A stretch of 64,000 bases of DNA from Epithemia pelagica (GCA_946965045.2 OX337235.1:620001-684000); one strand, 5' to 3'; counted from the stretch's first letter, positions 33,051 to 53,143 are shown. Numbers and translations: made by a program. The notes: a model not told the origin generated them from the letters alone.

Positions 33051-34559
33051 ATGACCGTCGAATCCGATTTACCCACCACCGTCCGCACCTCTTCCAATGC
33101 AATGGAACAATACCAGTCCGACGACGAGGAGCGCCACGAACGATTGCCGAATGGGAATGACGAGGAGTCGTTGCAAAAACCCTCGCATCTTCTCGACCGT
33201 AGTACCAACACCAAAGATATCATTGTGAATGGCCGAATCAAGGATGGTCCTTGCACCCGTCCTGTTTTTCCAGGAGAAGAAGGGTTTGACGAAAACAATG
33301 CCGCCTTGCCGGTCGTCATTAATGAATGGGCGCAGGGTACGTCCATTCATGGAGTGCCCTTGGTGACGGATGCGACCGTGTGGAAATTTTGGAAACGAGC
33401 CATCTGGATTGTCTTGGTCTTTATTTCGGCTGGATTCATGTTGTGGCAAGTGACGCAATTGATTCGACAATACCGCGATTATGAAGTCATTACCGATACC
33501 GAAACGATCAATCCAGAATCGCTCGAGTTTCCCCGCATCACAGTCTGCAATGCCAGTCCGTTTTCCCAATCACGCAAAGACCGATTCAACATTCCGTATC
33601 CCAAGAACGAGGAGGAATTTGTCCAAGTGTCAACGCCGTTGGAAGAATTCATTGGCGCTTCCTGGTTCAATGGCATTGAACTTAATGTATCCGAGGTTTG
33701 GAAACCTGTTATTTTACCCGAAGAAGTAGGTCGCTGTTGGGCCTTTGATACCAACGAGACGGTTCGTCGTCCCGGATACTATGGTGGTCTCAAAATCTGG
33801 ATTGATTTGAGACAATACGATTACGACAAATGGTCGGAATTTGCCGCCGCCTTTTTGTGGTCACAACACAAGGACATGCTGCTGGATAGTCAGTTGCCCA
33901 TTGCCACGGCCAAACCGGGACATGAAACCCTCATTTCCCTCCAAATGAGTCAATTTCAACGCGAAAAACAACTACCCTGGGCCCGGTGTGAAGGAGAAGC
34001 GCCCGAATACACACAAGGGCGTTGTCGGTCCGAATGCATTATGGAATACATTCGAGAGAAATGTCAATGTCGACGCTACGGTGATGAAACCGATAAGGAT
34101 CGTCTCGATTTTTGTCCTCCCGACGACGAGTGTTTGCAATTTGCCATTAACAGTGGAGGGATTGTATCGGAACAGCAATGCCCCAATGCCTGTGACATGC
34201 CGACATGTGCCGTCACGGAATACGAATTCACTACGGCCGAGGCCAATTTTGCCGAAACCTGGTTGGAACAATTTCCCTATGACGACTTTAACATTACCGA
34301 AGAATACCTCTTGCAAAACTTTGTATCGGTGACTGTCAATTTTCGAAGGATTCAATACAGTTTGTTGACCGAAAGCAAGGCTGTTTCGTTTGCCCAATTG
34401 CTCGGTTCGATTGGTGGTTCCATGGGCTTTTTTCTGGGAATTTCTCTCCTGAGTATTTTTGAATTGGTGGGTGATTTGGGCATGTTACGATTGCTCCCTC
34501 GATGGTTTGGCCATCGACACTTGTATGGATTGGGTGCCGTCGAACACAAGGTCGAGTGA
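33051..34559 (+). CDS. DEG/ENaC (ASIC-like) channel subunit, copy 1
   Basis: Pre-M1 TSIHG, M1 helix, FPRITVCN, GRCWAF, Cys-rich thumb, M2 LLGSIGGSMGFFLGISLLSIFEL. Start placed at ATG 33051 (MTVE) by comparison with the paralogues. Confidence 0.92.
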   Translation: MTVESDLPTTVRTSSNAMEQYQSDDEERHERLPNGNDEESLQKPSHLLDRSTNTKDIIVNGRIKDGPCTRPVFPGEEGFDENNAALPVVINEWAQGTSIHGVPLVTDATVWKFWKRAIWIVLVFISAGFMLWQVTQLIRQYRDYEVITDTETINPESLEFPRITVCNASPFSQSRKDRFNIPYPKNEEEFVQVSTPLEEFIGASWFNGIELNVSEVWKPVILPEEVGRCWAFDTNETVRRPGYYGGLKIWIDLRQYDYDKWSEFAAAFLWSQHKDMLLDSQLPIATAKPGHETLISLQMSQFQREKQLPWARCEGEAPEYTQGRCRSECIMEYIREKCQCRRYGDETDKDRLDFCPPDDECLQFAINSGGIVSEQQCPNACDMPTCAVTEYEFTTAEANFAETWLEQFPYDDFNITEEYLLQNFVSVTVNFRRIQYSLLTESKAVSFAQLLGSIGGSMGFFLGISLLSIFELVGDLGMLRLLPRWFGHRHLYGLGAVEHKVE

Positions 34560-35071
34560 GAAAAAGACGGGGCGACGGTATACGACGAGAGCAGCCAAAG
34601 GAGAGATAGTTCCTTGGTATGGCATATATTTGTCAAAAGACGATCCTCTGGTGCGTGTGGGCAGTGTCGCTTGGAGGACTCTGTCAGTAGGAGATGAAGC
34701 GAGTAAATGTTGCTACTACTAGTAGGAGAATAGTTGAAGATTCGTTCCAATCGATGAAAAAACTTGACCTCTACTACCTCCATGTTACACGCGGTCCGTT
34801 CACGTGTGGAGAATATACCATGTTCTCCGCTCTAGACTGAAAAGAGCCGATGGCCTCCCGTTGTGTACTCCTATGAGATAGGAGTAAGAGACTTCCCAAT
34901 AATTCCATTCCCATTGGTATTGGTGGGTTTTGCCCGATCTTGGGAAAATAATATGACATCGTAAACCATAAACCATGCTATTCCATTCGTAGTCGTGAGT
35001 GTGACGTCGGGATCGCGAGGCGCTCTTGGTCTTGGGGGCTTGGGGTGCGCGTTGAATAACCGCTGTTTTTC

Positions 35072-35238
35072 TGTCTCATTCCGGCTGATACACGAATTCT
35101 GACCCAATACGGGACACATACGTCAGAAATACAACGGTCATTACCGTTTACCGTTTTACTGGTTTCATGCGTTGAATGTAGCGTAATTCTTCATCTTAAT
35201 CTTTCTTTGGAGTGGATTCTATCAAGTAGAATAAGACA
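35072..35238 (+). repeat. 5' LTR of Copia-2
   Basis: TGTCTCATT...AATAAGACA, identical to 41476-41642. Confidence 0.97.
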
Positions 35239-35282
35239 GTTTATCAGACCCACCGTCTGGTAAGGGTAAGAAAGAGAGAGAG

Positions 35283-38200
35283 ATGGTTACTTCAACGCGT
35301 TCTAACACGAAAACGGCTGCTACCGCAACTGGGACTCAGGGCGGTAGTGGAGGAAGCGGAAGTGGAAGCGGAAGCGGAAGTGGAAGCGGAAGCACAGGAG
35401 CCTCGGAAACTGGCAGGGATCGTACTTCACGCCATGGCGCGAGTACGGGAGCTGGAGCCGGCACTCATGCCGGAGGAGGGACGCCAGGAGCTACTACCAT
35501 GGGGACTGGCGCCGGGACAGCGGCCGGTGCGGCCGTGGGTGGAGGCATGGCTCCTGATGCAGGTGCAACTGGAGGTGCACCAGGAGGTGGCGCAGGAGCT
35601 GGCGCTGCGGGAATGGGAGGCGCTGGTGTTGCTGCCGGCGCAGGAGGAGGAATGGCAGGCGGAGGCGCCGCAGCAGGAGTACCTGGCGGCGCAGGAGGAG
35701 GTGCTGGAGGGCATGGAGCAGGCGGAGGCGCTGGTGGAGGCGCTGGTGGAGGCGCCGGTGGAGGCGCTGGTGGCGGTGCTGGAGGTGGCCCAGCAGGAGG
35801 CGGTGGTGGCGACGGCGGCGCTGGAGGAGGAGGAGGAGGAGGAGTACCTCCAGGCGTGCCTCCCCCACCATTGTCTGCAGTCGGGATGGCACTTACTACT
35901 TGTGGGGCCAATCCCTACGAGATCTACGCGCTTGAGCATACGGAAAGGCTTAACACAATCGAAGCCTTTGGACGAATGACCTCTGAAGACGTGACGAACC
36001 TTGTGTCACGACTCGAGAAGCGTCCGTACCCCCACAGTGTAGCCATCCCTACCAGTGTCATCAAGAACATTCAAGGTTTGTGTTTCTGGTCCGCCAGGGC
36101 GCGTCGCCAGGGGCGTCGCCTTCAATATGGCGATTTCGATCAGGACGCACTAATGGAATCCCTCGACGCTATGGAAATTCAAGCCGAGAAGACTTCTTCG
36201 CCGGATATTAAGCCCTCTGCCCTCAAGGAAGATGACTGGGAAGATTGGAGTCAGGAGTTCCCTACCTACCTGTCCCACATATTTGGCAAGCAGAAGGCCC
36301 CGTTGGACTATGTGATTCGCCCCGACTTGGATCCCGCACACGTTTTTGCAAGTACCCGTGAGCAGGAACTATACAGCTACCCCCTCGGTGGTCCGTATTT
36401 TCGTGAAGACAACAAGGAAGTGTTTAGGTTGTTGAGCGACTTGGTCAAGGACCAGCCAGCAACGTGGATCCAGCCTTTCCAAGCGTCGCAAGACGGACGT
36501 CGTGCCTGGTTGGCACTCGTGAACCATTTCGATGGCGGTGGACAAAAGGAGAAGCGGATCTCCAAGGCTGAGGCCGTCCTTGACACTCTGTACTATAATA
36601 ATGAGCGTGTTTTTAGTTTTGATGCTTATGCGTCTAAGCTATTACGTGCATTCCGGACTCTCGATAACACACCCAATCGGCGTACCCCGTCCAACCAAGT
36701 CAAGATCCTCATCGATAACATCAAGATCACGTCGGCTGAGTTCGCGGTCATTAAAGGACACGTGCGTAGCAACCATCGCACGGACCTGCATGCCGCAATC
36801 GATTATATTTCACGTGAGATTGCCGAAATCTTTCCTGATGTCTCGATTGGAAATCGCCGCGGTCAGGCGCGTCATCGATTCGTCTCGGAAACCGCCTCTC
36901 AAGCGGCGTCTCGACCACGCAACTTCGCTGGATTGTCGCATAACAACGGCATCTATACCTTTTATGGTGTAGATGTCACCGATGTGACGCGACGTTTCAC
37001 ATCGCAAGAAATGATCACTCTTGGAACGCAAGGACAGGCGTACATTCACCAAGAAAGGGCTCGGTTGCGCGGGCAAGGTGGTGGTCGTGGCGGCCGTGGT
37101 TTCGGCGGTCGGGGACGAGGAAACTATGGCGGCCGTGGTGCTGGTGGACGTGGGGTTGCCGAGATCAGCACAAGTGGCGACCAGTCTGTTATCACGGACA
37201 TCACCAACGACCAAGGGGACCGCACGACAGCGGCGGAAACGGGGACAACAAACACTGACAGGGGCAGCCACAATGGCCGAAGATTTGGAAACGGGGCATA
37301 TGAACAGGGAAATGGGAATGAAGAGGGAAGTAGTCGTACAGGGGGAATCTCCGTTGTGAATTGTGGACCGCAACGTCGCGTAGGAAAAGTTGAAAAGGGT
37401 TGGTTGTTGGAAAGTGATTCCGCCGTGGGAAGGAACGAGATGGACACGATGGCCGACACTTGTTGTGCCGGCAAGAATTGGGCACTGGTAGAAACTACTG
37501 GCATGGAATGCACAGTAAACGATTTCGCGGGGAATCAAGTGGGCAGGACGTCGGTACCTGTTGCAACATGCGCCACGGTGGTTAGAGAAAGGAAAACAGG
37601 AGTCGAAATTGTGGTGATCGGACACCAGATGTTATGGTTTGGTAATTACCTAGATAAATCTCTTCTTAACCAAAATCAGATTCGGCATGCTGGACACGAA
37701 GTGAGGGATGATCCGACAAGACAAATGAAAGAAGGATTTGGGATTTGGGTGGACGGGGTCCACATTCCGTTTGAAGTACAAGGCACGACTGTGTATTTCG
37801 AGTCACGTGCTCCTACTCAGCACGAGTTGGAGAATCTACCGTCGATAACACTCACGAGACAGGAGCTATGGGACCCACAGAATGTGGACATCACCCAACA
37901 GGATTCAAGTCCGTATCTGGAAGCATATGGTGCAAGCATGGCGGGCATTGGGGAAGTGTCTCGCGTGTTGACGCCGCAAGGACTTGCTTCCGAATTGGCT
38001 AGTATCCCGCAAGTCCGACAGGTCGAGAGCTCGCGACATTCTGCCGTGACGGCCGAATCTCTCAGTCGCAAGTGGAAGATTGGCCTTGATACCGCAAGAG
38101 CTACCCTCCGAGTCACCACCCAACAGGGGATCCGGACAGCTATATCACCTATTACACGTCGCTATCGCGTGGACAATCTAGCCTTGCATCGGAACAGGCT

Positions 38201-41200
38201 CCAGACAAGATTTTATACGGATACATTATTTTCTAAGACATTGTCTTTGTCAGGAAACAAGTGCGCACAGATCTTCACCGACGGGCAGTTCACGACTGTT
38301 TATCCGTTATCTAGCAAGAGTCAGGTCGGACAGGCCTTGTCGAGCTTCATTGATGAAGTCGGAATCCCAGATAGACTTACCGCCGATCTGGCCGGTGAAC
38401 AAGCCGGGGACTCAACCTTATTCAAGAAACTCGTTCGATTGCATCGCATTGACATGCAATGGGCGGAGCGTCACACGGGCAAACAAAATCATCGCGCCGA
38501 ACGTGAGATTGGCCTCTTAAAACAACGTTGGCACCGTCGCATGATGGAGTTGGACGTACCTCGTCGTCTATGGGATTTTGGTCTCGTCTACGAGGCCGGT
38601 GTTTTAAGTCGAGTCGCCCGGGGACCAGATATGCGCTCCGGCGTTGAACGACTCTCCGGCAACACGCCTGACATCTCGGAATGGACCGACTTCTCGTTTT
38701 ATGACGTCGTTTGGTACCACAACAATGTCAAGGCGGACGCTACCGATGATCCAGTGCAACTTGGCCGGTGGCTTGGAATAGCACACAGGATCGGGAGCGA
38801 CCTCTGCTACTGGATTCTCACCAAGAGTGGAAAAATTATCGCAAGAACCACCGTCCAACACGTCACCGAGGAGGACTTGGCGAAGCCCGAAATGGAAGAA
38901 CGTATTCGACAGTTCAAGTTGATTGTTGAGGAAAGGTTGGACGATCGGAACTTTACGGACGATAGCAAGAATGGACCCGGTTACTTGGAAGACGTAGATT
39001 TGGAGGAAGAAAAGCGGGGACGTGCCGGGGTTGTACCGTCCGATGAAGAATACGGTGGAATGATAGTTGAACAAGCTCCCGAGGCAGATGAGCACGGGGA
39101 TGGATACGACAACTATGTCGGGGCACAAGTGCAGGTCGATATCGGGGGAGAAACGATCCTGGGAACGGTAACAAAGAGACAGAAAGGGTTAGACGGCAAG
39201 CCAGTGGGAAGGGCGCATCGGAATCCGACGTTCGATACACGGACTTACGAAGTTAGTTTCCCAGGTGGATTGTTACATGAGTATACCGCCAACATAGTGG
39301 CGGAGAACCTTTACTCAAGATTGGACAACGAAGGGAAGAGGCATCTGGTGATCAAAGAGATCGTCGGACACAGGAAAGACGGGGACGCCGTCCCGCAGGA
39401 AGAAGGCTACCAATATTCATCCAATGGTAACAAACACCCGAAAAGGACAACGAAAGGGTGGGAGATAGCAGTCGAATGTCGTGACGGTACCCAGATTTGG
39501 ATACCTCTCAAGGATGCGAAGAATGGATATCCTCTGGAACTTGCCGAATATGCGATTGCGCAGGGAATCCAAGACGAACCGGCATTCAAGTGGTGGGTAC
39601 CACAGACGATCAACCACATGCGCCGCCTGGTGAAGAAAGTGAAGAAAAAGTATTGGAAGACGACACACAAGTATGGGGTGAAACTCCCGCATTCGGTCGA
39701 TGAAGCGCTGAGGATTGATGAGCAGACAGGTACTAGCCTATGGAAGAACGCCATCGACAAGGAACTCCGAGTAGTCAAAATAGCATGGGAAGCACGGGAA
39801 GACCTAGACCTAGACGAGGTGAGGGCAGGAAGGCAACTTGTGGGCTATACTGAAATAAAGTGTCATATGGTCTTTGACGTAAAAATGGACCTTACTCGGA
39901 AGGCGAGGTTGGTCGCGGGAGGACACATGACGGAAGCGCCAGCCAGTCTTACTTACTCAAGTGTCGTGAGCCGAGATTCCATTCGCATCGCTTTCTTGGT
40001 TGCTGCACTAAATGGACTGAACGTTTTAGCGTGTGATATTGGAAACGCGTACTTAAACGCGCCGTGCCGAGAGAAAATATGGTTCCATGGTGGACCCGAA
40101 GTCGGAAATGAATTTCAAGGAAAGGTATGTGTCATGGTAAGAGCTTTGTACGGGTTGAAGTCGTCAGGGGCGAGTTGGCGGGCAACATTAATGGCGACGC
40201 TGTATGACATGGGATTTTCGGACACGCAGGCCGATCCTTGTGTACTACGGCGAAAAAGGAAGAAGTCAACAGGAGAAGAGTATTATGAGCTTATGTTAGT
40301 ATATGTAGACGACATTCTACTGGTGAGCGAGGTTCCACAGGAAGTACTCGACCAAATCGACAAACACTACAAGATCAAGGCCGGTAGCACAGGGGAACCG
40401 ACTGTATACCTAGGTGCCCAAATATACAAGCACAACCTTCCGAATGGATCATGGGCCTGGGGGATGTCGAGCGAAAAATACGTCAACAACGCCATCAAGA
40501 TTGTGGAGGGACTCTTGGAAGAAGACGGGGACGGGAAGAAATTGAAATCAACCGCCAAGGTCCCAGTATCGTCGTCTTACAAACCTGAGCTAGACATGAG
40601 TCCGGAGCTCAGCCCAGCCCTTACATCACGTTATCAACAGTTGATTGGTATATTGAGGTGGGCCGTGGAGTTGGGTCGGGTGGATATATACCTGGAGGTA
40701 TCGCTCCTTTCCCAATTCTTGGCCAATCCACGGGTCGGCCACCTGGAAGTGGTGTACCACATCTTCGCATTCTTGAAGTCTCACCCGAAATTGAAGATGG
40801 TCTTCGATCCGATGGACGTGAACCTTGATGAGAGTTGTTTCCCACAAGTGCCCATCGATGAATGGAAGGAGTTCTACGGCGACGTGGCCGAGGAATTGCC
40901 TGTGAAAATGCCCAAGCCCCTGGGACGGCCAGTTACCATCACTTGTTTCGTAGACGCAGACCACGCGGGGAATGTGGTCACTCGACGTTCTCACACCGGG
41001 ATTGTTATCTTCATACAGAATGCCCCGATCTTGTGGTATTCCAAGAGGCAGAATACAGTGGAGTCGTCAAGCTTCGGAAGCGAGTTCGTGGCACTCAGGA
41101 TCGCTAAAGAGATGATTGTTGCCTTAAGGTACAAGCTCCGAATGTTTGGTGTGCCTGTTCCTTCACCGGCGAACATACTCTGTGACAATCGTGGTGTCGT

Positions 41201-41462
41201 GAAGAACACCAGCATACCTGCTTCCGTGTTGAATAAGAAGCACAATGCCATCAACTACCACTCAGTCAGGGAAGCCGCGGCTGCATCAATCCTACGGGTT
41301 GGGAAGGAAGATACCGAAACCAACATTGCAGATTTGTTCACAAAGATTCTGCCACGAGAACGGAGAAACGTGCTTATTTCGCAATTTACTTATTCTTCGG
41401 CGTTTGGTCCAGGGGGGCCCCCATCCATTGCGAACAAGCGCGTATTCCCCGCTCACTTCTAA
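35283..41462 (+). CDS. Copia-2 gag-pol polyprotein
   Basis: Gly-rich N-terminus, gag, RGG tract, protease EMDTMADTCCAG, integrase YTDT / TADLAGE / AEREIG, chromodomain-like segment, RT DIGNAYL / LYGLKSSG / YVDD, RNase H FVDADHAG / CDN. Confidence 0.95.
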   Translation: MVTSTRSNTKTAATATGTQGGSGGSGSGSGSGSGSGSTGASETGRDRTSRHGASTGAGAGTHAGGGTPGATTMGTGAGTAAGAAVGGGMAPDAGATGGAPGGGAGAGAAGMGGAGVAAGAGGGMAGGGAAAGVPGGAGGGAGGHGAGGGAGGGAGGGAGGGAGGGAGGGPAGGGGGDGGAGGGGGGGVPPGVPPPPLSAVGMALTTCGANPYEIYALEHTERLNTIEAFGRMTSEDVTNLVSRLEKRPYPHSVAIPTSVIKNIQGLCFWSARARRQGRRLQYGDFDQDALMESLDAMEIQAEKTSSPDIKPSALKEDDWEDWSQEFPTYLSHIFGKQKAPLDYVIRPDLDPAHVFASTREQELYSYPLGGPYFREDNKEVFRLLSDLVKDQPATWIQPFQASQDGRRAWLALVNHFDGGGQKEKRISKAEAVLDTLYYNNERVFSFDAYASKLLRAFRTLDNTPNRRTPSNQVKILIDNIKITSAEFAVIKGHVRSNHRTDLHAAIDYISREIAEIFPDVSIGNRRGQARHRFVSETASQAASRPRNFAGLSHNNGIYTFYGVDVTDVTRRFTSQEMITLGTQGQAYIHQERARLRGQGGGRGGRGFGGRGRGNYGGRGAGGRGVAEISTSGDQSVITDITNDQGDRTTAAETGTTNTDRGSHNGRRFGNGAYEQGNGNEEGSSRTGGISVVNCGPQRRVGKVEKGWLLESDSAVGRNEMDTMADTCCAGKNWALVETTGMECTVNDFAGNQVGRTSVPVATCATVVRERKTGVEIVVIGHQMLWFGNYLDKSLLNQNQIRHAGHEVRDDPTRQMKEGFGIWVDGVHIPFEVQGTTVYFESRAPTQHELENLPSITLTRQELWDPQNVDITQQDSSPYLEAYGASMAGIGEVSRVLTPQGLASELASIPQVRQVESSRHSAVTAESLSRKWKIGLDTARATLRVTTQQGIRTAISPITRRYRVDNLALHRNRLQTRFYTDTLFSKTLSLSGNKCAQIFTDGQFTTVYPLSSKSQVGQALSSFIDEVGIPDRLTADLAGEQAGDSTLFKKLVRLHRIDMQWAERHTGKQNHRAEREIGLLKQRWHRRMMELDVPRRLWDFGLVYEAGVLSRVARGPDMRSGVERLSGNTPDISEWTDFSFYDVVWYHNNVKADATDDPVQLGRWLGIAHRIGSDLCYWILTKSGKIIARTTVQHVTEEDLAKPEMEERIRQFKLIVEERLDDRNFTDDSKNGPGYLEDVDLEEEKRGRAGVVPSDEEYGGMIVEQAPEADEHGDGYDNYVGAQVQVDIGGETILGTVTKRQKGLDGKPVGRAHRNPTFDTRTYEVSFPGGLLHEYTANIVAENLYSRLDNEGKRHLVIKEIVGHRKDGDAVPQEEGYQYSSNGNKHPKRTTKGWEIAVECRDGTQIWIPLKDAKNGYPLELAEYAIAQGIQDEPAFKWWVPQTINHMRRLVKKVKKKYWKTTHKYGVKLPHSVDEALRIDEQTGTSLWKNAIDKELRVVKIAWEAREDLDLDEVRAGRQLVGYTEIKCHMVFDVKMDLTRKARLVAGGHMTEAPASLTYSSVVSRDSIRIAFLVAALNGLNVLACDIGNAYLNAPCREKIWFHGGPEVGNEFQGKVCVMVRALYGLKSSGASWRATLMATLYDMGFSDTQADPCVLRRKRKKSTGEEYYELMLVYVDDILLVSEVPQEVLDQIDKHYKIKAGSTGEPTVYLGAQIYKHNLPNGSWAWGMSSEKYVNNAIKIVEGLLEEDGDGKKLKSTAKVPVSSSYKPELDMSPELSPALTSRYQQLIGILRWAVELGRVDIYLEVSLLSQFLANPRVGHLEVVYHIFAFLKSHPKLKMVFDPMDVNLDESCFPQVPIDEWKEFYGDVAEELPVKMPKPLGRPVTITCFVDADHAGNVVTRRSHTGIVIFIQNAPILWYSKRQNTVESSSFGSEFVALRIAKEMIVALRYKLRMFGVPVPSPANILCDNRGVVKNTSIPASVLNKKHNAINYHSVREAAAASILRVGKEDTETNIADLFTKILPRERRNVLISQFTYSSAFGPGGPPSIANKRVFPAHF

Positions 41463-41475
41463 AGCTTGCGGGGAC

Positions 41476-41642
41476 TGTCTCATTCCGGCTGATACACGAA
41501 TTCTGACCCAATACGGGACACATACGTCAGAAATACAACGGTCATTACCGTTTACCGTTTTACTGGTTTCATGCGTTGAATGTAGCGTAATTCTTCATCT
41601 TAATCTTTCTTTGGAGTGGATTCTATCAAGTAGAATAAGACA
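41476..41642 (+). repeat. 3' LTR of Copia-2
   Basis: Identical to the 5' LTR, preceded by a short purine-rich GCGGGGAC. Confidence 0.97.
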
Positions 41643-41685
41643 TTTCCACCGTGTTTTTTATTTTTCTGCTAACGCCAATCGTAAT

Positions 41686-41737
41686 CGAGTAGTAAATACA
41701 CTACTCCGATAAATTCGAGTAGTAAATACACTACTCC
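41686..41737. repeat. Two palindromic 22-bp direct repeats (30-bp period)
   Basis: CGAGTAGTAAATACACTACTCC at 41686-41707 and 41716-41737, each with GAGTAGT/ACTACTC arms. A related pair lies at 45640-45691. Confidence 0.8.
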
Positions 41738-42420
41738 CATAATTTCAAGTCGTCCTATCTATGTCAATTTCAATTTGTTGGGTTTCTTTGAGCTTGCTTC
41801 TGGTAGAACTTGAGATTCTGAACACATTGATGTATGATAGTCTACACTAATTTTCACATGATCACCGTCGTTTTGGCCGTCAAAATTTCAGCAATTTTCA
41901 TGATTTTTTGAATCCATCGACCATGGCCCAACTTTGAATGCTACGGACACAGTCAATAGCCAATAACAAATGCCAAGACCTTCCATTCTGGTGTAAAATA
42001 ACATGAACTATAGGACTGTGCCTTTACATGTTATTTGCAAATGCCTCTGTCGAGCATTTGCCACTTCTCTCTCTCGGACCGTGTTTTTCCAGGTTCATCC
42101 CATTGACCCTTTTTCGACACATTGCATCTTTCCTTCGTCAACTTTGGCCACCACACACCATCTGTCTTGATCATATGGCTTTATTTCATCCATTCTCACC
42201 TGGCTTGGCCTCACTGGAAGATGATCCATGCCATTTTCATGGTCCGTCCTCATTGTCTCTCATGGTCCTCGCAAAAAAAAGAGGTACAGTCTATTTTAAC
42301 GCTGCCGCGCGCACCCGCTAGGGTGACGTCGACCGACGCGCCCGGCTCCACACAAAATGAGGAGCGAGGACTAAACATGACGGGACAAGTTGTGAGGACG
42401 GGACAGAGAGTAGAAATCGG

Positions 42421-45162
42421 TTACAAGGGTGGGGCAGCATCCCTGAGAATGACAGGGCGCCAGGTATTGATCCAAGAGCGAAGAGAAACAGCAGTAGTTT
42501 CCGCTGCGAAATGAGCAGCGGTAGACGAGTAGAAAATATCGCGTTCAGAGGGCGGGAGACGGGTGCGGAATTCGTATAAAGTCGTGATTTCGCGTTGTGC
42601 TTGGGCGTAAGATGCGGCTTCAACTGTTTGGGGTGAATTACCGTGAAGGTTGTGGTTTCGAGTGATCCATAGAGCATGGATATGTTTCCATAAGAGTTTA
42701 ATTGTGCCAGTAACAAAATGAGTCCCGGAGACTGTGCGTGAATGTTGATGGGTGGTGGAGAGATAGTTGTCTTGAAGATTGCGCCATTGAATAGTGAAGC
42801 GGCCGAAAAAGATGTGAGCGTATCCGATAAGTTGTTGTTGAGTTACCAGCGATTGATATGAGAGGGAGAGGGTGGGAAAAGACGGTGGAACGTTGGCGAG
42901 CCAAGAGTGAATAATCTCCACAAGAAGTAGGTTCAGAGTTGGGTCGAGGGATTGGAGACGCCAGAAATCTTGCAGTTCATCAAGAAGAGGTCCTTTCCAT
43001 TGTCGGTGAGGACAACAGAGAAAGTGAGAGCGAGTCTCAACAACAGAGGGAGTGCAGAGGGGGCATGTTTCTGTGTAGTAAGTGGCGTAGCGAGAACGAA
43101 GATAGCCAAGGGGAAGCCAGTCATGGAGAAACTTAATGTGGAATTGTCGACGGGTGAAAACAGTCGTGATAGCGCGTCCGTGTGCCGTCCAATCAATCAT
43201 CTCGAAAGTCTCGAGCGACCACTCGTTGCGATTGCATAAGTATTGGCGTAAAGCTTTCCATGTAGAGAGGTAGCGCAGAATAGATCGGTAATTCGAATTG
43301 ATAGTCCCTTTGGGAGAATGAAGTATGGCTTGGCTGCCTGTGATAAGAGGGACATGTGTCGATGAAATAGTAGGCGGGTATTCCTATGAGTCTGCCAATC
43401 GGTCAGCGTCTACATTGAGCTGGGCAGCAAGGGTCAGTGTTGGATATGGTCGCAGGCGATCTTGGTGGCCCCGAACATGTAGGAAACTTGGAGTTTCTGG
43501 GAATTGTTTGATAGATGTACTAATTGATTGTTGGATATCCCAGTCTGCTTCCATCGTAGAGTATGGGAAGTCATAGACCCATTCCAGTCGCTTTTCCACA
43601 GTATTGATCAAACTTTTGGAATCGGTATAGAAGATTAATTGTGTCGGAAGACTGAAGCCATAAGACGTCGTAAGATGAATCACAGCACGTAGCAATGCAA
43701 GCATTCCATAACTCTCCGACCGGAAGGACGAAGTACGATAACCAGGAGCAGGACCACTTAATTGAAAAAGGCGTTGTCCAGTATCCGTGCTGCAAATACA
43801 GCCAAATTTGCCAGTGAACATAGCCGCTGAGCCATCGCTGCACAAGAAGAGGCGGACAGTCGGAGTGGTGAAACTTTGTTGGATTTGTTGAGGTTGGCAA
43901 AGGAGGACAAGTTTGGACATTAGGTGTTGATCCCATTGTTCGAGAGAAGAGACGTAGTCAGGAAAAGTCTGGGGTGGTGGTGGATCGGAAGGTATGGCTT
44001 GAGGACGGCAAGGCAGAATAATGAAAGCGGGACCGGAGTGGTTGACATGAACGGGCACTGCTGTCGATGGGGGACTTGGAGAGAGTTGAGACGTTGGAAG
44101 AAAAAGTGGGTGTTGGTACCAGTAGTGTCGAAAAATATTGGGAGATTCGGCCACATAGAGCTTGGAGCTCGGGCAGTCAACGAGGAATTTCCAATGGCGA
44201 TGTAATTTCTGTCCAGGTACAGTCCAGGAACCGAGAGGGTGTACCAGCATTCGTGTAACTCCTGTTTGTCTGACTAAGTCAAGGTATTTGTCCCACTGTT
44301 GCCAAGCGCCGGGGCCCGGCCGGTCTTGGTACGGAATCAGGCCGTGATGAGTCGAGAAATCGTCATGGCGATGTTCAATAGTAAACAACGAGAGTTTCGT
44401 GCCATCAGGAGTGGATATATCACTGAGCAATGTCACACCCAGGTAGATACGGCATGCATTGAGCAGAATCAGTTCCGTTGGAGTGAATTGCGACGACTCT
44501 ATTGCAATATCCATGAGGAAACGGTCGTTGACTCGTTGGAGAGCGGGAAGGAATTTGGATTCGAGTTCAATATTGCAGTTTGCTTTTTGGAGGAAGGTTC
44601 GCACTTGTGGGATCCATTGCATCGGAATATGGAAATGCTAGTACCCGCGAGAAATTGAGCCCACGAGATCGCGATCTTGGCAAGTTGTGCCGGAACTCCC
44701 GGTGATCTGAGACATGCTAGCAGTAGGTAAGTCTGAGAAATTCCACGCTCCACTGAGAGCGTTCGCAGTCCGATTCCTCCTAATTCTGCTGGTCCGTAAA
44801 CGACTGCGTTTGGCATATGGCGATTGAAGCCATACTTGGGTAAAAAGGCCTTCTTGAACTGGACTTGTAAGGCATTGCAGTGGCCATCAGAGAGGGAAGA
44901 CGAGGGTAGCGGATATGATATGCTAGGGAGGTAGATAGCAAGGTAATAGGCCCAGGCGTCGGTTCTGGAGAAAGGGCTGGTGGCCATCACGGAAGTATGA
45001 GCTTTGTTCTTTTTCGCAAGAGCAAGGTACAACCCTTTATCTGTTCGATGTGGCGATTTCTGTACACCCAAAGTCTTGTGACTCCGATAGGAAGATAATT
45101 GTTTGATCGGTATTGTTTGGTCCGAATCATGGAAGTGAATTGTAATTTGAGGTGTGGTCGCT
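42421..45162 (-). mobile_element. 5'-truncated, decayed non-LTR retrotransposon (LINE with RNase H)
   Basis: RT thumb (KTLGV, YLPSISYPL, GFNRHMP.AVVYGP.ELGGIGL), RNase H (CSDGS, SFRSESYG, YTDSKSLI, HVRGHQD, NVDADRLA), C-terminal CPLC..ETRSHFLCC. Frameshift near 44620 and in-frame TAG at 43384-43386. RT YxDD core not present. Confidence 0.85.
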
Positions 45163-45826: not shown

Positions 45827-47413
45827 ATGACAGTAGAACCGGAAGAAGGCCCCATCGTAGGATCGCAAAACCCCAGGTTGAATTCGAGTGCAGCAGACCG
45901 ACGACCAGGAAACTTGTCGTCCTCCTCCTCCTTGAAGAACCAGAACCAACTGGTGTGGTCCTCCTCCTATGGCGAAACCAACCTCGATCATGGACACGAA
46001 ACCAACACTGATGAACCGTCGCAAACGCTTGTACACGCCGAATCACAACAAGAACGACTGTCATTGCACCAACGCAATAGTATCCAGAAACTTTTTTCTT
46101 CTTCGCCGCCGCATCCCCTTTATCCAGGTGACGAGGGCTTTGACGAAAACAATGCGGCCCTCCAAGTTGTTGTCAACGAATGGGCACAAGGTACCTCCAT
46201 TCATGGTGTGCCTTTGGTCACAGATGCGAGTGTGTGGAAATTGTGGAAACGGTCCGTCTGGATTGTCTTGGTTCTGGTTTCGTCAGGCTTTATGGTGTGG
46301 CAAATGACTCAATTGATTCGACAATATCGCAGTTACGAAGTCTTGACCCGAACCGAAACCATTAATCCGGAATCCATGGCCTTTCCACGTGTTACCATTT
46401 GCAATGCCAGTCCTTTTTCACGTTCACGAATGCAAGAATTTGGCTTGGAAAATCCTACAACGTTGCAAGAATTTGAACAAATATCGACTCCCTTGGAGGA
46501 TTTTATCAATCGCACCTGGTTCAATGGTGTGGAATTACCCGTCTCCCAATCGTGGCAGTCAACCTTTATGCAAGGGGATTTGGGTCGATGTTGGTCGTTT
46601 GATACGACGGAACATGTGTCGAGTCCCGGTTATTATGGTGGATTGCGGGTGTTTATCGATTTGAATCAGTACGATTATGACGATACAGTTGATTTTGCTG
46701 CCGCCATTGTTTGGGTCCAACAAGCCGGTACCTTTTTGGATACTCAATTACCCATTTATGCCGTCAAACCGGGCAAGAAAAGCTTGTTGTCCATTACCTT
46801 GAATCGATTTGAACGAGAACAAGAAGCACCCTGGGCGCGGTGTCAGGGACAGGCACCCGAGTATACGCAAGGACGATGTCGATCGGAATGTATTTTGCGG
46901 TATATTCGTGAAACCTGTCAATGTCGTCGGTACGGCGATGCCACCGACCCGTCCCTCTTGTTTTGTCCCCGGTACGATCCCTGTCTCTTGTCCGCCCTGA
47001 GCAATTCCAATACCATTATCCAAGAGTCCTGCACCCAAGATTGCAATCTTCCCAGTTGTATTGTCAATGAATACACGGCCAATGTGCAAGATGTCGACTT
47101 TGCCCGCAATTGGGTGTCCAATTTTGACTATGACCTGTACAATGTTACACCGCAGTACTTGTTGGAGAATTATCTCATTTTGAATGTCAATTTTGAAAAG
47201 ATTGAATATCACTTGCTGACCGAAACCAAGGCTGTCACCTCGGCCCAATTATTGGGATCCATTGGTGGTTCCATGGGACTCTTTTTGGGCATTTCCTTGT
47301 TGAGTGTGTTTGAATTGGTGGGTGATTTGGGTTTGTTGCGATTGTTCCCACGATGGTTAGGCCATCGTCATTTGTTGGGATTGGGTGCCGTGGTTTCCCA
47401 CAAATCCGACTAA
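45827..47413 (+). CDS. DEG/ENaC (ASIC-like) channel subunit, copy 2
   Basis: Same motifs as copy 1 (TSIHG, FPRVTICN, thumb cysteines, LLGSIGGSMGLFLGIS). Intact and intronless. Confidence 0.93.
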   Translation: MTVEPEEGPIVGSQNPRLNSSAADRRPGNLSSSSSLKNQNQLVWSSSYGETNLDHGHETNTDEPSQTLVHAESQQERLSLHQRNSIQKLFSSSPPHPLYPGDEGFDENNAALQVVVNEWAQGTSIHGVPLVTDASVWKLWKRSVWIVLVLVSSGFMVWQMTQLIRQYRSYEVLTRTETINPESMAFPRVTICNASPFSRSRMQEFGLENPTTLQEFEQISTPLEDFINRTWFNGVELPVSQSWQSTFMQGDLGRCWSFDTTEHVSSPGYYGGLRVFIDLNQYDYDDTVDFAAAIVWVQQAGTFLDTQLPIYAVKPGKKSLLSITLNRFEREQEAPWARCQGQAPEYTQGRCRSECILRYIRETCQCRRYGDATDPSLLFCPRYDPCLLSALSNSNTIIQESCTQDCNLPSCIVNEYTANVQDVDFARNWVSNFDYDLYNVTPQYLLENYLILNVNFEKIEYHLLTETKAVTSAQLLGSIGGSMGLFLGISLLSVFELVGDLGLLRLFPRWLGHRHLLGLGAVVSHKSD

Positions 47414-48570
47414 GACACTGAAAGAGTGAGAAGCGGACGACGCGTCGAATACTTGCGTGACTCTCTCTCTCGGCTCAGAGAGGGCGGTCCTCTTGTGTGT
47501 GAGATGTTGGCCTCTGGACCACAATGCTTCGATGTGTCTACCACTGGATCTGTGGTTCCTCTCATCGTTTGCGTCTGTGCGTCGGTAAGCGCGAGTCTTT
47601 TTTCTCTGTCGGCGCAGGACACGTGTGAGACCCATCCACAGACAACCACACCACCACCAACAACAAGAACACACACTGTGGAAGGATGATCATAACGCTC
47701 GGGTCCCTGTATTCGACGACCAACGCTTCCAACAAGAATAAGAAGAAGAACTGATTCAACATGTGAATGCAAGATGATGACGATGATGGTCTCTGGTTGC
47801 AAGGGGTGTTGTCACCCTGTTGGTGTGCGCCCAAACAAGAAGAACGATTTTGCCGCAGCCATGACTCTCTCAGCAATTCCGGATAGATACAGTATAGTAG
47901 GTATAGTAGAGCAAAGGGGAAAAGCTCTAGCTTGCACAGCTTCTTGTGGTTGAATCGTTTCGTAGTTGTGTTCCGCTTTAGTTGTCTGGGTGTGGTTCTC
48001 TTCTTTGTTGGAACCCGAATACACAGTCTCGATAATACACCTCTTTATTATGTAGACTAGGCGAAGGAACCGTTGCCGCTAGAATTTGGAAAATGTGCAC
48101 GTCCTGGTATAGTCGACGGGCTCGCACGCTGGCCCTTCGGACAGGCAACTATTTGGAGAGCCTGCGACAACGACTGACGCGCGCGGATGTGGATCTCCCA
48201 CACTGGACTCTTCGGTGGCAGCAACAAAACGGAGCGAAGACGAGACAAGGAAAGGTGTGTATAGAATACATTGCAACAACCACCGACCGTCGTGTATCGC
48301 TAGACCCAGGGTCTACATCATTGGTGTGTGTGTCGTAACAAGAGAGAGAGAGAGAGAGAGGACTTATTTCAACGAGACGAGTGAGACCCAATCGTCGTTC
48401 TTTTGTCCATTACAGAACATACAAACCGTCATTTGAGAGGTCTCCTTTCGAAAACGTTGAGGTTCCGTGGCTTTGGTTCTTTGCTGGCTGTGGGATAATT
48501 TGTGGATCGTTGTGTGTGTGTGTGTGGTCACTGGAGAGTTGTTGCCGTTTCCAACAATATCATCATCATC

Positions 48571-50841
48571 ATGTCGGCAATTAAAATGGATGAATTGTTG
48601 GTGTCGTGGTTGGGCAGTGACGATGTGTATGAAAATGTCTTGGATTTGATTGAAAATTATCGTGCCACACACGAGGATGAAAAAAAGGACGAACCATCGG
48701 CCGAAGGAGATCCGTTGAAAACAGCCACAACGACGGACAACCACAACAACAACGAGGACGATCCTACCGTGGACTCGTCGGATCCTCCTCCCACCACCAC
48801 AACGACTCCAACCATGATGCCTCCTCCCATTCCTCCCTTTTATCCTGTCAAGGTGGCCGGTCGCATTCGGAAACGACGTCAAATGACCGTCTCGCAAAAG
48901 GATACCTGGGATCCCTTGCCGGAAGGAAGTACTACGACAACTACTTCGACGACCAGCAGCAGCAGCACCACCACACCGTCTTCACCGCCTCCGGCCGCTG
49001 GTTCTTCGGCTTCCAATCCCATTCCCTTGTTGCCGCAATTGTTGGATTCACGATCCTCCGCCTCCTCGTCTCCGCATGTCAAGGAAGATGGTACAGCCGA
49101 AGGTGAGGAAGGAGCGGCATCTGCCGAACAACAACAGCAAGCACAACAAGAACCGTCGATTTGCGTTCGCGATCAAACCATGGCAATTTATGCCGAATTG
49201 GGTCAAGATCCACCCCTGGCCAGTCCCACTTCGGACGATGACGATGACGACTATGGGGACTCGACGACGACCAATAATTCCAAACGGTTTGCCCAAAAAT
49301 ACTTGACGGTCGAAACCTTTGTCCGCGTCACCAAGGATGTCTGTGGCTTTCCGTCCTTTTTCAATATTCCCTTGTACGCTCGCATTTTGGCGCTCTGGAA
49401 TGCCAAGACGAGTGAATTGGCCGCCGCACCCATGGAAGTGATTACCTTGGAAATGTTGGAATGGTTTTGGAAGACGGAAATGGAACCCTACGATCCCTGC
49501 GATCGCTTTTTTCGACTCGTGGCGCAAATTGGGGCCGACGCCATTTTGCGCGATGATTTCTTGCCCTTTATCAAGGCCCTGTTGCAAGATCATCCCGGTT
49601 TGGAATTTTTGAGCAGCCATGCGGAATTTCAAGAAAAGTATGCCGTCACGGTCATTACCCGCATCTTTTATGGCGTCAATACCTGTCATTCCGGACGCAT
49701 CACGGCCCGGCAAGTCCGACGCTCCGATTTGTTGCAAGCCTTTCAACAAGTCGATGAAGAAGAAGATATCAATAAGGTGACACGATACTTTTCCTACGAA
49801 CATTTCTATGTCTTGTATTGTCGCTTTTGGGAGTTGGATCATGATCGAGATTATCGGATTACCCGAGAAGATTTGTTAAAATATGGCGATCAATCCCTCT
49901 CCCACATGATTGTCGATCGCATTTTTGATGCCGCCCCGCGACCCTTTGAACCGCAACAACAATTGCTCTTGCTGCAACAGCAGCAACAACAAGGCGATGC
50001 GCAGCAACAACAACAACAACAATTGTTGGCCTTGCAACAACAGCCTCCCCGTCCCAGTCACCGCGATTATTTGAGTTACGAAGATTTTATTTATTTCATG
50101 TTATCCGAAGAAGACAAGTCCAATGAAGTCTCGGTCAAGTATTGGTTCACCTGCGTCGATGTCGACGGCGATGGCAAACTCAACAATATGGAATTGCGAT
50201 CCTTTTATGCCGTCCAATTGCATCGCATGCAATTCATGGGCCATGAGGTAGTCCCCTTTGAAGACATGTTGTGTCAAATGATGGATATGATCAAACCCGC
50301 GCACAATGACTTTTTGGTCGAAACCGACTTTTTGCAACCCGAATGTCGTCAAGTGTCGGGGGCCCTCTTTGATGCCCTCTTCAATCTCAACAAGTACCTC
50401 TTGTTTGAACAACGCGATCCCTTTGTCGAACGACAAAAACGGGAAGATGAATTTGATTGCGATTGGGACCGATTTGCCTGTCTGGATTATTCACGATTGG
50501 CCATGGAAGAAGAAGCCCGCGAAGAAGAAGCCATGGAAATTGATTGGGTCACGGTCGATGACGAGGAGGAAGATGAAGACGATGACGAAGAGGACGACGA
50601 CGATGAAGACGATGACGACGACGACGATGGTCCTCGGGGAGGTGGTTTGACTTACGATGACGATGATTTGCAACATACCGATGACGATTCCGAAAGTGAT
50701 TTGCAAGGAGCGGCCATGCTTCAATATGGCATGATGCAGCAGCAGCAACAACAGCATCATCCCCATGCGCATCATCACCATCATCATCATGGACATCATG
50801 GAGGTGGAGGCGGAAATGTTGCTAGTGAAGCGCCCTTTTAA
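48571..50841 (+). CDS. PPP2R3: PP2A regulatory subunit B'' (EF-hand)
   Basis: MDELLVSWL N-terminus, FLPFIKALLQDHPGLEFL, EKYAVTVITRIFY, FSYEHFYVLYCRFWELDHDRD, SVKYWFTCVDVDGDG, LFDALFNLNKYLLFEQRDPF. Start set at ATG 48571. Confidence 0.93.
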   Translation: MSAIKMDELLVSWLGSDDVYENVLDLIENYRATHEDEKKDEPSAEGDPLKTATTTDNHNNNEDDPTVDSSDPPPTTTTTPTMMPPPIPPFYPVKVAGRIRKRRQMTVSQKDTWDPLPEGSTTTTTSTTSSSSTTTPSSPPPAAGSSASNPIPLLPQLLDSRSSASSSPHVKEDGTAEGEEGAASAEQQQQAQQEPSICVRDQTMAIYAELGQDPPLASPTSDDDDDDYGDSTTTNNSKRFAQKYLTVETFVRVTKDVCGFPSFFNIPLYARILALWNAKTSELAAAPMEVITLEMLEWFWKTEMEPYDPCDRFFRLVAQIGADAILRDDFLPFIKALLQDHPGLEFLSSHAEFQEKYAVTVITRIFYGVNTCHSGRITARQVRRSDLLQAFQQVDEEEDINKVTRYFSYEHFYVLYCRFWELDHDRDYRITREDLLKYGDQSLSHMIVDRIFDAAPRPFEPQQQLLLLQQQQQQGDAQQQQQQQLLALQQQPPRPSHRDYLSYEDFIYFMLSEEDKSNEVSVKYWFTCVDVDGDGKLNNMELRSFYAVQLHRMQFMGHEVVPFEDMLCQMMDMIKPAHNDFLVETDFLQPECRQVSGALFDALFNLNKYLLFEQRDPFVERQKREDEFDCDWDRFACLDYSRLAMEEEAREEEAMEIDWVTVDDEEEDEDDDEEDDDDEDDDDDDDGPRGGGLTYDDDDLQHTDDDSESDLQGAAMLQYGMMQQQQQQHHPHAHHHHHHHGHHGGGGGNVASEAPF

Positions 50842-51448
50842 GGGAACGGAAAGAAGGAAAAGTCTAGGAAACGACGTATATCCGATTAGGAATACGAGTC
50901 GGTGGTAGCGAACCATTACACGATCTATATCGTAACGACTGCATTTTACTTAGTTTCCATAGGCGAGAGATTGGGAGGCAACATTACATTAAATGTTTTG
51001 CAAACGACGGTGCGACACTTGGAATTGCAAATAACGTTGGATTCGCGAGACAAGCGAGCAAGTGGTACCATTGAAAAGTACTGCGTAGATTGCCTCAGGG
51101 GGCACCAAAACCATGCGATCCAGGTTCTGCTCTTCTTGTTCTGGTCAAAAGAGAGCAACGTTACGTTGACATGGAACGTATTCTACGTACATGGATTCCT
51201 TTCGTGGTTGGTTGTGTCGATCCCTATTCATGTCACAGTTAAATTGCTGCAACAACAACAACAACTGGATGATTTCCCAAAAAGGTAGACAGCTCTCTCG
51301 TCTGCACAGGAGAAACGTGACCTCACAGGAAGGCTATACTTGCGAATGTCTCAGCACGTCGGGGCTGTCATCGTCACTGACTTGTTCTTTTCTCTTTATC
51401 GTCCCAGAAATAAAGAAGAAGAATCGGTACGTGGTGGGTATGGTCCTT

Positions 51449-51532
51449 GTTGCCTCCGACATGTTTGACCAAGAAGTGGCTGATCAGACACGTATCTTGT
51501 ACGGCGGAAGTGTTAGTCCCAAATCAATCGAT
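51449..51532 (+). pseudogene. TPI: Isolated triosephosphate isomerase fragment (28 codons)
   Basis: VASDMFDQEVADQTRILYGGSVSPKSID contains the TIM loop-7 signature RILYGGSV.P. No other TPI sequence is visible on either side. Confidence 0.65.
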
Positions 51533-51568
51533 ACAAGTGTCCTCAGTTTCTCACTCTCTCTGAGTGTG

Positions 51569-53143
51569 TTACTCGGGTTTGTGGGAAACCACGGCACCCA
51601 ATCCCAACAAGTGACGATGGCCAAACCATCGGGGAAACAATCGCAAGAATCCCAAATCACCCACCAATTCAAACACACTCAACAAGGAAATACCCATAAA
51701 GAGTCCCATGGAACCACCAATCGATCCCAACAATTGGGCAAAGGTGACCGCCTTGGTTTCGGTCAGCAAGTGATATTGAATCTTGTCAAAATTGACCGTC
51801 AAGAGAACATAATTTTCCAACAAGTACTCTCGTGTGATATTTAACCGGTCATAGTCAAAACTGGCCAACCAATTGCGGGCCAAGTTCACATCTTGCACAT
51901 TGGCCTTGTATTCATTGACAATGCAACTGGGACGACTGCAATCTTGTGCACAATGCTGCTGAACAATCGCACTGGAATTTCCAATGGCCGACGAGAGACA
52001 GGGATCGTACCGGGGACAAAACAAGAGGGATGGGTCAGTGTCATCGCCGTAATAGCGACAGTGGCATTGTTCTCGAATATAGCGCAAGATACATTCCATT
52101 CGACATCGTCCTTGGGTATACTCCGGTGCCTGTCCCTGACACCGCGCCCACGTTGCTTCTTGTTCTCGTTCAAATCGATCCAATTCAACCGTCAACAAGG
52201 TTTCCACACCAGGTTTGACGGAATACAGGGGCAAGTGGGCATCCAAAGTGGTACCGGCTTCTTGGACCCAGACAATGGCCGCGGCAAAATCGACTGTTTC
52301 GTCATAGTCATACTGATTCAAATCGAGCAACACCCGCAATCCACCATAATAGCCTGGACTCGACACATGTTCCGTCGTATCAAACGACCAACATCGACCC
52401 AAATTGCCTTGCACAAAGGTTGACTGCCACGGTTGAGAGACGGGCAATTCCACGCCATTGAACCAGGTGCGCTTGATAAAATCCTCCAAGGTAGTCGATA
52501 TTTGTTCAAATTCTTGCCCCGTTGTGGGACTCTCCAAGCCAACTTCTTGCATCCGTGAACGTGAAAAGGGACTGGCATTGCAAATGGTAACACGTGGAAA
52601 GGCCATTGATTCTGGATTAATGGTTTCGGTTCGGGTCAAAACTTCATAATCGCGATATTGTCGAATCAATTGAGTAATTTGCCATACCATAAAGCCTGAC
52701 GAAACTAGCACCAAGACAATCGAGACGGACCGTTTCCACAATTTCCACACGCTCGCATCGGTGACCAAGGGCACACCATGAATGGAGGTACCTTGTGCCC
52801 ATTCATTCACCACAACTTGGAGGGCCGCATCGGTTTCGTCAAAGCCCTCGTCGCCTGGATAAAGGGGATGCGGCGGCGAAGAAGAATAAGCCGGTTTCTG
52901 AATACAATTGCGTTCGTGCAAAGACAATCGTCGTATTTCTGAATGTACGAGCTGCTTGGGCGACGGTTCGTCCTCGCTGCTTGTTTCTGGTCGATGGAGG
53001 TTGTCATTGGAGGACCTCACCATTTTGTCGGCGTTGGAGGACGAGAACGAGGACCTACCATCTGCGTGACGGTCCGCCGCACTCGAATTCAACCTGGAGT
53101 TTGGCGACAACCCGATGGGACTCTCTTGCGGTTCCACGGTCAT
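51569..53143 (-). CDS. DEG/ENaC (ASIC-like) channel subunit, copy 3 (inverted relative to copy 2)
   Basis: Intact 524-aa ORF, closest to copy 2 (long identical peptide runs), with the same channel motifs. Confidence 0.93.
   Translation of the reverse strand: MTVEPQESPIGLSPNSRLNSSAADRHADGRSSFSSSNADKMVRSSNDNLHRPETSSEDEPSPKQLVHSEIRRLSLHERNCIQKPAYSSSPPHPLYPGDEGFDETDAALQVVVNEWAQGTSIHGVPLVTDASVWKLWKRSVSIVLVLVSSGFMVWQITQLIRQYRDYEVLTRTETINPESMAFPRVTICNASPFSRSRMQEVGLESPTTGQEFEQISTTLEDFIKRTWFNGVELPVSQPWQSTFVQGNLGRCWSFDTTEHVSSPGYYGGLRVLLDLNQYDYDETVDFAAAIVWVQEAGTTLDAHLPLYSVKPGVETLLTVELDRFEREQEATWARCQGQAPEYTQGRCRMECILRYIREQCHCRYYGDDTDPSLLFCPRYDPCLSSAIGNSSAIVQQHCAQDCSRPSCIVNEYKANVQDVNLARNWLASFDYDRLNITREYLLENYVLLTVNFDKIQYHLLTETKAVTFAQLLGSIGGSMGLFMGISLLSVFELVGDLGFLRLFPRWFGHRHLLGLGAVVSHKPE

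Follow-up and report, generated by a model that had tools for sequence, protein, structure and literature searches.

Three predicted DEG/ENaC channel-subunit genes of a pennate diatom, Epithemia pelagica, and their local duplication under purifying selection

In animals, DEG/ENaC channels have central roles in the handling of salt and in the senses of touch and acidity, and the origin of the family is debated. A 64,000-nt stretch of the genome of Epithemia pelagica (GCA_946965045.2 OX337235.1:620001-684000; hereafter the window, by whose positions all coordinates are given) carries three genes that resemble members of this family, and it raises the question of whether these are genuine diatom genes, whether all three are being kept, and what their products may do. 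The window belongs to a 1.03-Mb contig of the European Nucleotide Archive (ENA) assembly ERZ21939226. The three genes are called P1, P2 and P3 (Table 1). The explanation that we judge best overall, with a probability of roughly 0.6, is that they encode DEG/ENaC subunits of a diatom type, that they arose through two local duplications and are retained by purifying selection, and that their products probably form a cation channel.

Architecture of the predicted subunits

The initial annotation had described three intact intronless paralogues at this locus, with an HG motif, two transmembrane (TM) helices, thumb cysteines and a GxS belt. All of these features were confirmed in the window, where the three open reading frames (ORFs) are complete and uninterrupted. 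Each of the products matched the Pfam family ASC (PF00858) with E-values of about 1e-59 (to 2e-61) and scores of 200-206 bits, against a curated cut-off of 23.6 bits. An in-frame ATG lies upstream of P1 at 32949; because the sequence MTVE opens all three paralogues, the start of P1 was placed at 33051, which is also where the public gene call places it. From the region preceding TM1 to TM2 the ORFs are colinear with ASIC, and introns are therefore unnecessary to account for them. At the amino acid level P1 is about 57% identical to both P2 and P3, and P2 and P3 are 80% identical to each other.

When P2 was compared with the sequences of the Protein Data Bank (PDB), ASIC2 and ASIC1 chains were the best matches (E about 1e-28), and ASIC5, ENaC, FaNaC and PPK matched more weakly. 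The HG pair was present in all of the aligned rows shown apart from those of a far clade (P0024-P0028), which lack it, and an FPxVTxCN motif follows TM1 in P1, P2 and P3. Twelve ectodomain cysteines are common to the three proteins, ten of them in the thumb and colinear in the sequence alignment with the thumb cysteines of ASIC. Most of the ectodomain cysteines, together with E496 of TM2, are invariant across 29 aligned sequences.

An AlphaFold2 model was built for P2 alone from the 29-sequence alignment. It has pLDDT values above 90 over residues 170-470, a disordered stretch at residues 1-96, and helices at residues 139-168 and 472-510. Foldseek matched the model to ASIC1 and ASIC2 with an E-value of 1e-29 and TM-scores of 0.64-0.72, and VIA-align matched it to ASIC1 with a Z score of 29 over 343-376 residues. 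Residues 139-507 of the model correspond to residues 40-465 of ASIC1, so that the span from TM1 to TM2 is about 55 residues shorter; in the model this is most simply read as a reduced finger. Directly after TM2 all three proteins carry a tail motif, G-D-L-x3-R-L-x-P-R-x-F-G-x-R-x-L-x-G-x-G (P2 residues 499-520, window positions approximately 47321-47386), which is conserved through the diatom-type clade described below and absent from an AT-rich clade. This cytosolic motif could be a trafficking or regulatory site, and we know of no counterpart in animal DEG/ENaC channels. A signal peptide or plastid-type leader was not found in the channel protein, both termini of which would be cytosolic.

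The closest known systems include vertebrate ASIC1 and ASIC2 (PDB 6x9h, 5wku, 6l6p and others). They have in common with the diatom proteins the fold (Z 28-29, with 340-375 residues aligned), the two TM helices, the HG and FPxVTxCN motifs, ten thumb cysteines plus a pair after TM1, the glycine at the degenerin position (L-L-G), the GxS belt and the glutamate of TM2. The diatom proteins differ in being only 22-28% identical to them, in the shorter span, and in a belt that reads G-I-S and not G-A-S; they also have one disulfide pair fewer than ASIC1, with 12 ectodomain cysteines against 14. Unlike vertebrate ASICs, they have a long disordered N-terminus and an RLxPRxFG tail, and the residues at the proton-sensor, acidic-pocket and Ca2+-block positions are changed. 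Judged from their sequences, P1-P3 are best classified as nuclear pennate-diatom genes for DEG/ENaC subunits of a distinct, diatom-type branch.

A diatom branch of the family

The initial annotation had placed these paralogues in a non-animal genome, and the sequences around them and related to them bear this out. L001, a second contig of this assembly, shares the gene order of the window (SET-domain gene, P1, P2, EF-hand gene, P3) and is 97-99% identical to it, for which reasons we regard it as the other haplotype. At third codon positions P1-P3 have a G+C content (GC3) of 0.51-0.53, in line with the genes around them. Every one of the strongest homologues (33-81% identity) is either a diatom sequence or an unlabelled marine one; the closest named ones come from Entomoneis paludosa and Entomoneis sp. 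CCMP467 (complete MMETSP transcripts), Epithemia clementina (NCBI proteins) and Seminavis robusta. Further ASC genes were found on other contigs of the assembly, two on ctg1286l about 6.4 kb apart and one on ctg1343l. These additional genes fall into different deep subclades, indicating that the genome holds a diversified family beyond the trio.

The breadth of this family was assessed by searching a profile exhaustively against 1.84 billion cluster representatives, a library without taxon labels. There were 20,032 matches at E <= 1e-3, of which 2,388 reached E <= 1e-30. The top 150 matches were sorted by similarity and motifs; 10 of them could be named, one being a verified animal sequence. 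With earlier matches added, approximately 60 diatom-type representatives were counted, which have HG, a G-I-S-type belt and an RLxPR tail. A second, large and non-diatom group, accounting for approximately 90 of the best 150, comes from AT-rich genomes, and its proteins have a high content of K, N and I; HG is missing from one subgroup, which keeps a G-x-S belt. The sources of the AT-rich group include JGI sample 3300071567, ENA, and an NCBI "hypothetical protein". For the far clade of this group (about 30% GC) a ciliate or giant-virus origin was considered, and nothing spoke for or against it.

Two trees were computed, a maximum-likelihood tree of 35 sequences and a tree of 78 sequences, the latter with a single verified animal sequence and with metazoan clades A/B, Cafeteria and Tunicaraptor not included. 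The 45 diatom-type rows of the 78-sequence tree were monophyletic (SH-aLRT 100), with the window genes nested within them, and were separate from the AT-rich group (99) as well as from an ASIC3-like protein of Saccoglossus, the sole verified animal sequence. The stem of the diatom-type clade is long, at 1.25 substitutions per site. P1-P3 show each of the features by which the clade is recognised, namely HG, a G-I-S-type belt, an RLxPRxFG tail and placement in the tree. All of the diatom-type members that carry an organism name are from benthic raphid pennates (Entomoneis, Epithemia and Seminavis). Word-index searches, which are too insensitive to prove absence, gave no named match for Phaeodactylum, Thalassiosira or other planktonic models.

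These observations bear on two other accounts of where the genes come from. One is that the contig, or the genes on it, are animal sequence contaminating an algal assembly. DEG/ENaC channels are best known from animals, and one named match among the top 150, the Saccoglossus protein, is indeed from an animal; that protein, however, is only about 27% identical and lies outside the diatom clade, while the 1.03-Mb contig has a matching second haplotype, its neighbouring genes share the GC3 of P1-P3, more ASC genes lie on other contigs, and the close relatives are all diatom or unlabelled marine sequences. On the second haplotype, GC3 and the diatom relatives, contamination is excluded for practical purposes. 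The other account, horizontal transfer into diatoms from an animal or another protist in place of old eukaryotic descent, is rather unlikely in our estimation but deserves more weight. The family is distributed patchily among eukaryotes, a pattern for which both extensive loss and lateral transfer have been raised (Elkhatib et al. 2023, PMC10507113), and the named diatom members are confined to benthic raphid pennates. Against this stand the long stem, the many deep subclades and the signature motifs of the clade's own, which together indicate that any transfer was ancient; moreover, a 78-sequence tree with one verified animal sequence cannot give the direction of a transfer.

Outside animals, DEG/ENaC homologues have been reported from the heterokont Cafeteria roenbergensis and from Tunicaraptor unikontum (Elkhatib et al. 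2023, PMC10507113), and those of Heterokonta (Cafeteria roenbergensis) and of a filasterean relative appear also in Aguilar-Camacho et al. 2023 (PMC9822975). By their published description, the Cafeteria and Tunicaraptor homologues are, like the diatom proteins, uncharacterised DEG/ENaC proteins of unicellular eukaryotes. Diatoms are mentioned in neither paper (the word "diatom" occurs 0 times in PMC10507113). A protein of Seminavis robusta listed in NCBI and UniRef as "Acid-sensing ion channel" (P0065) belongs to the diatom-type clade and shares its HG, G-I-S belt and tail motif; unlike the window genes it falls in a basal subclade, its best match among the reference proteins of diatoms has 37% identity, and its name is automatic. 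It was retrieved by a profile of more distant members. No paper combining degenerin with diatoms, or Seminavis robusta with acid sensing, was found in the searched literature, and a 2024 survey of diatom Ca2+ channels mentions neither ENaC nor ASIC; a 2026 preprint lists PF00858 in passing among the domains of algal metagenomes. The remark in the initial annotation that diatom DEG/ENaC channels had not been characterised functionally therefore holds for the searched papers, none of which describes or tests one. The family is already in databases, partly under automatic names, and the searched papers contain no description of it.

Local duplication, selection and the surrounding genes

In the maximum-likelihood tree the trio is a single clade, (P1,(P2,P3)), with support of 100/97. 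Its sister group comes from another diatom assembly, ERZ25042306, and the two groups belong to a subclade in which Entomoneis is also found. Since the trio is a single clade with an external sister, the expansion is local, as the initial annotation had proposed, and specific to this lineage. P2 and P3 form an inverted pair flanking an EF-hand_13 gene. In our reading, the trio is the product of two local duplications that followed the split from the nearest sampled relative: P1 separated first, and P2 and P3 then arose as the inverted pair around the EF-hand gene.

The suggestion that selection maintains the three frames was examined with dN/dS ratios (ω) by the Nei-Gojobori method, with bootstrap 95% ranges for P1-P2 and P2-P3 and none for P1-P3. 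The ratio was 0.22 for P1-P2 (0.16-0.30; dS about 1.5), 0.22 for P1-P3, and 0.36 for P2-P3 over the whole gene (0.28-0.46). For the last pair, ω was 0.29 in the channel core (dS 0.30), and the disordered N-terminus evolved faster (ω 0.59). The upper bootstrap limits of 0.30 and 0.46 are significantly below 1, and neutrality, which would have told against selection on the frames, was not seen at ω values of 0.22-0.36. All three copies are kept under purifying selection. In the allelic comparison, P1 is intact on both haplotypes, with 7 nucleotide differences, and so is P2, with 19 nucleotide differences and an allelic ω of 0.21.

The region around the genes had been called otherwise decaying, a description that did not survive the comparison with L001: the neighbours are intact host genes, and the bulk of the remaining sequence consists of two insertions that have no counterpart on the other haplotype. 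The 11.3-kb interval between P1 and P2 is made up of a 1.8-kb spacer and these two insertions. The larger one is a Copia-type retrotransposon with long terminal repeats (LTRs) of 171 bp (35071-35241 and 41475-41645) that are 99% identical, and with a single intact gag-pol ORF of 2059 aa containing RVT_2. Its empty site is preserved in L001, where positions 12008-12011 join window position 35071 directly to 41643. Its presence in one haplotype only indicates a very recent insertion, and the element may still be active. The first 200 residues or so of its ORF form an extreme Gly/Ala-rich low-complexity tract. The second insertion, of which both the empty and the filled sites were read, carries three minus-strand ORFs without a Pfam match and has no clear terminal signature; one of these ORFs has RNase H-like residues, and the left end of the insertion opens with an A8 run. 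A further segment of about 1.1 kb at 28541-29681 (within 28540-29900) lacks a counterpart on the other haplotype, with colinear flanks, and is probably another insertion/deletion polymorphism. Low-complexity tracts rich in CAA/CAG occur at 47650-47849, 49850-50049 and 50450-50850, coding for poly-Gln in the EF-hand gene; in mapping they attract foreign contigs and give rise to spurious joints and depth spikes, which do not reflect splicing.

Table 1. Positions of the channel genes, their motifs and other features in the window, and of related genes on other contigs
Feature	Position	Strand	Remarks
P1, predicted DEG/ENaC subunit gene	33051..34559	+	ORF 502 aa; Pfam ASC 2.9e-59; earliest-branching of the three copies
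P2, predicted DEG/ENaC subunit gene	45827..47413	+	ORF 528 aa; Pfam ASC 1.9e-60
P3, predicted DEG/ENaC subunit gene	51569..53143	-	ORF 524 aa; Pfam ASC 1.3e-58; inverted duplicate of P2
HG motif of P2 (H126-G127), before TM1	46202..46207	+	TSIHGV identical in P1-P3
G-I-S pore belt of P2, in TM2	47288..47296	+	G488-I489-S490 invariant in 29/29 aligned sequences; opposite ASIC G-A-S (HMMER)
11 bases missing from the other P3 allele	52612..52622	-	Coding-sequence nt 522-532, just after TM1; frame shifted (alignment of window and L001)
Host SET-domain gene, upstream of P1	30966..32525	+	Pfam SET 5.2e-07; on the other haplotype too
EF-hand_13 / EF-hand_7 host gene between P2 and P3	48502..50841	+	Pfam EF-hand_13 3.1e-33; same place on the other haplotype
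Copia-type LTR retrotransposon	35071..41645	+	P1-P2 interval; no counterpart on the other haplotype
Second insertion, about 2.9 kb, retroelement-like ORFs	42274..45153	-	Absent from the other haplotype; blastn gap 42273-45154 closed in L001
Further DEG/ENaC genes, same assembly	L003 8001-9380, 15826-17358; L006 3001-4668		Different deep subclades
AT-rich group members	L005 5257-6681; L007 3958-5505, 10001-11557; P0024-P0028, P0072, P0082-P0184		Contigs 30-33% GC

Putative role, alternatives and implications

Because the whole pore module is conserved (HG, the degenerin-position Gly, a Gly four positions ahead of the belt, the GxS belt and the TM2 Glu), the products of the three genes probably assemble as trimers into a cation channel of the amiloride-sensitive kind. 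Each subunit would have a disordered cytosolic N-terminus of about 100 residues, followed by HG, TM1, the ectodomain, TM2 and the tail RLxPRxFGxRxLxGxG, and the ectodomain would consist of an ASIC-like palm, a beta-ball, a thumb with ten cysteines and a reduced finger. The plasma membrane is the most likely location of the predicted trimers, whose pore would be voltage-independent and of a Na+-preferring cation type. Heteromers of P1, P2 and P3, which the initial annotation had envisaged as sensing pH, salinity or chemical cues, are a conjectural possibility. Diatoms reportedly show Na+/Ca2+ excitability, in work by Taylor and by Helliwell and colleagues. Part of the literature on diatom excitability is listed in the references of PMC11085791. 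An open Na+ pore in sea water would depolarise the cell strongly, and the most economical role for such a channel would therefore be that of a gated sensor that triggers excitability: an extracellular or mechanical cue, probably not protons in the ASIC fashion, would open the pore, and the resulting depolarisation would feed the Na+/Ca2+ response.

Homologues are transcribed in Entomoneis, as shown by complete ORFs in MMETSP. Among the sequencing runs found for Epithemia pelagica, none is recorded as RNA. Four public runs (X1-X4) were available as Logan contigs of unrecorded kind, from which transcription cannot be established, and their mapping took in P3, the EF-hand gene and the final 164 bp of P2. 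The depth of X1 and X4 is even, at about 130, and their contigs are very long, which marks them as DNA. In X2 and X3 the depth of the intergenic region between P2 and the EF-hand gene is several-fold to more than 10-fold below that of the EF-hand gene and P3, and one X3 contig ends 40 nt upstream of the ATG of P3. On this pattern, such as RNA-derived contigs would show, X2 and X3 are probably derived from RNA, which we take as a hint that P3 is transcribed.

The claim that all three genes are intact stands for the window haplotype and fails for the other one, in which P3 is frameshifted by the loss of 11 bp; the public annotation of L001 gives this allele as two fragments of 208 and 327 aa. 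The deletion is not an assembly error, because a contig of run X2 repeats the same gap, linked to a neighbouring single-nucleotide polymorphism (SNP) of that haplotype. The X1 and X4 contigs break at the deletion site. In run X3, which comes from another sample, one contig has the linked SNPs of that haplotype but not the gap, indicating that the deletion is recent and segregating. By parsimony count, with a sole outgroup that is dS-saturated, P3 shows four derived replacements at positions where at least 80% of the family agree (W141S in TM1, Q303H, P331T and L483M in TM2) against none in P2, and the totals of derived changes are near equal (10 in P3 and 11 in P2). Constraint on P3 looks weaker, on modest evidence from these comparisons. 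This opens a reading in which the copies are redundant and heading for loss, with P3 an early pseudogene and the intact frames a reflection of youth. It draws on the frameshift allele, seen in the assembly and in an independent run, on the four-to-none contrast with its changes in both TM helices, and on the higher ω of P2-P3 (0.36, against 0.22 for P1-P2). Yet the pairwise ratios are significantly below 1, the 4-versus-0 contrast is statistically weak beside such similar totals, the deletion is recent and missing from the X3 sample on the same haplotype background, and P1 and P2 are intact on both haplotypes, P2 with an allelic ω of about 0.2. We give impending loss a minority share of the probability, somewhat above that of horizontal transfer.

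A different departure from the proposed role would be that P1-P3 are proton-gated pH sensors like the ASICs of bilaterians, pH being among the cues suggested in the initial annotation. ASIC1 and ASIC2 are the best matches in sequence and structure, and the Seminavis homologue bears an acid-sensing name in NCBI; a best match, however, measures similarity and not phylogenetic placement, and the span between TM1 and TM2 is about 55 residues shorter than in ASIC1. The residues at the ASIC positions do not support the mechanism. In the HMMER alignment, the His that follows TM1 (ASIC2 Q-H-V-T-K) is opposite Val, the thumb acidic-pocket sequence C-A-D-P-A-L-D is opposite C-L-L-S-A-L-S, and the Asp of L-L-G-D-I-G-G is opposite Ser. 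The roles of these residues as proton sensor, acidic pocket and Ca2+-block site are those known from the ASIC literature. PMC10507113 is a further source for them. By these alignments, P1-P3 lack the proton-sensing determinants (the His after TM1 and the thumb acidic-pocket carboxylates) by which the ASIC subfamily is recognised. Proton gating of this kind is accordingly improbable, clearly more so than horizontal transfer.

Several points weigh against the reading that we prefer, namely that of retained diatom-type subunits forming a cation channel. Because the proton-sensor, acidic-pocket and Ca2+-block carboxylates differ, the gating cue cannot be read from homology. To our knowledge, no characterised precedent exists for Ile as the central residue of the GxS belt, which leaves the ion selectivity uncertain. 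The 3' end of P2 is at zero depth in X3, and X1-X4 consist of contigs only, in which the uneven depth of X2 and X3 is the sole hint of transcription.

At the level of the locus, the picture is one of ordinary tandem gene-family turnover, in which genes have duplicated, transposon insertions are polymorphic and a null allele segregates. At the level of the family, published work contains few unicellular homologues, and a diversified, selectively maintained diatom branch, comprising at least approximately 60 clusters (50% identity) and present at several loci in the genome of Epithemia pelagica, offers an outgroup for the ancestral gating mode. It is also a candidate for a depolarising sensor in benthic diatoms, which are ecologically important. 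Some of the carrier species can be cultured, and the genome of Seminavis robusta is published. More tentatively, and as a possibility that we rate well below the cation-channel reading itself, the diatom-type clade may constitute a functionally new class of DEG/ENaC channels, marked by a reduced finger, an invariant G-I-S belt and a tail of its own, which would respond to a non-proton cue of benthic life (contact or shear, a salinity step, or a chemical) upstream of Na+/Ca2+ action potentials. If this were true, the clade would supply the first non-animal DEG/ENaC that is amenable to experiment, and it would help to show whether the family is older than animals.

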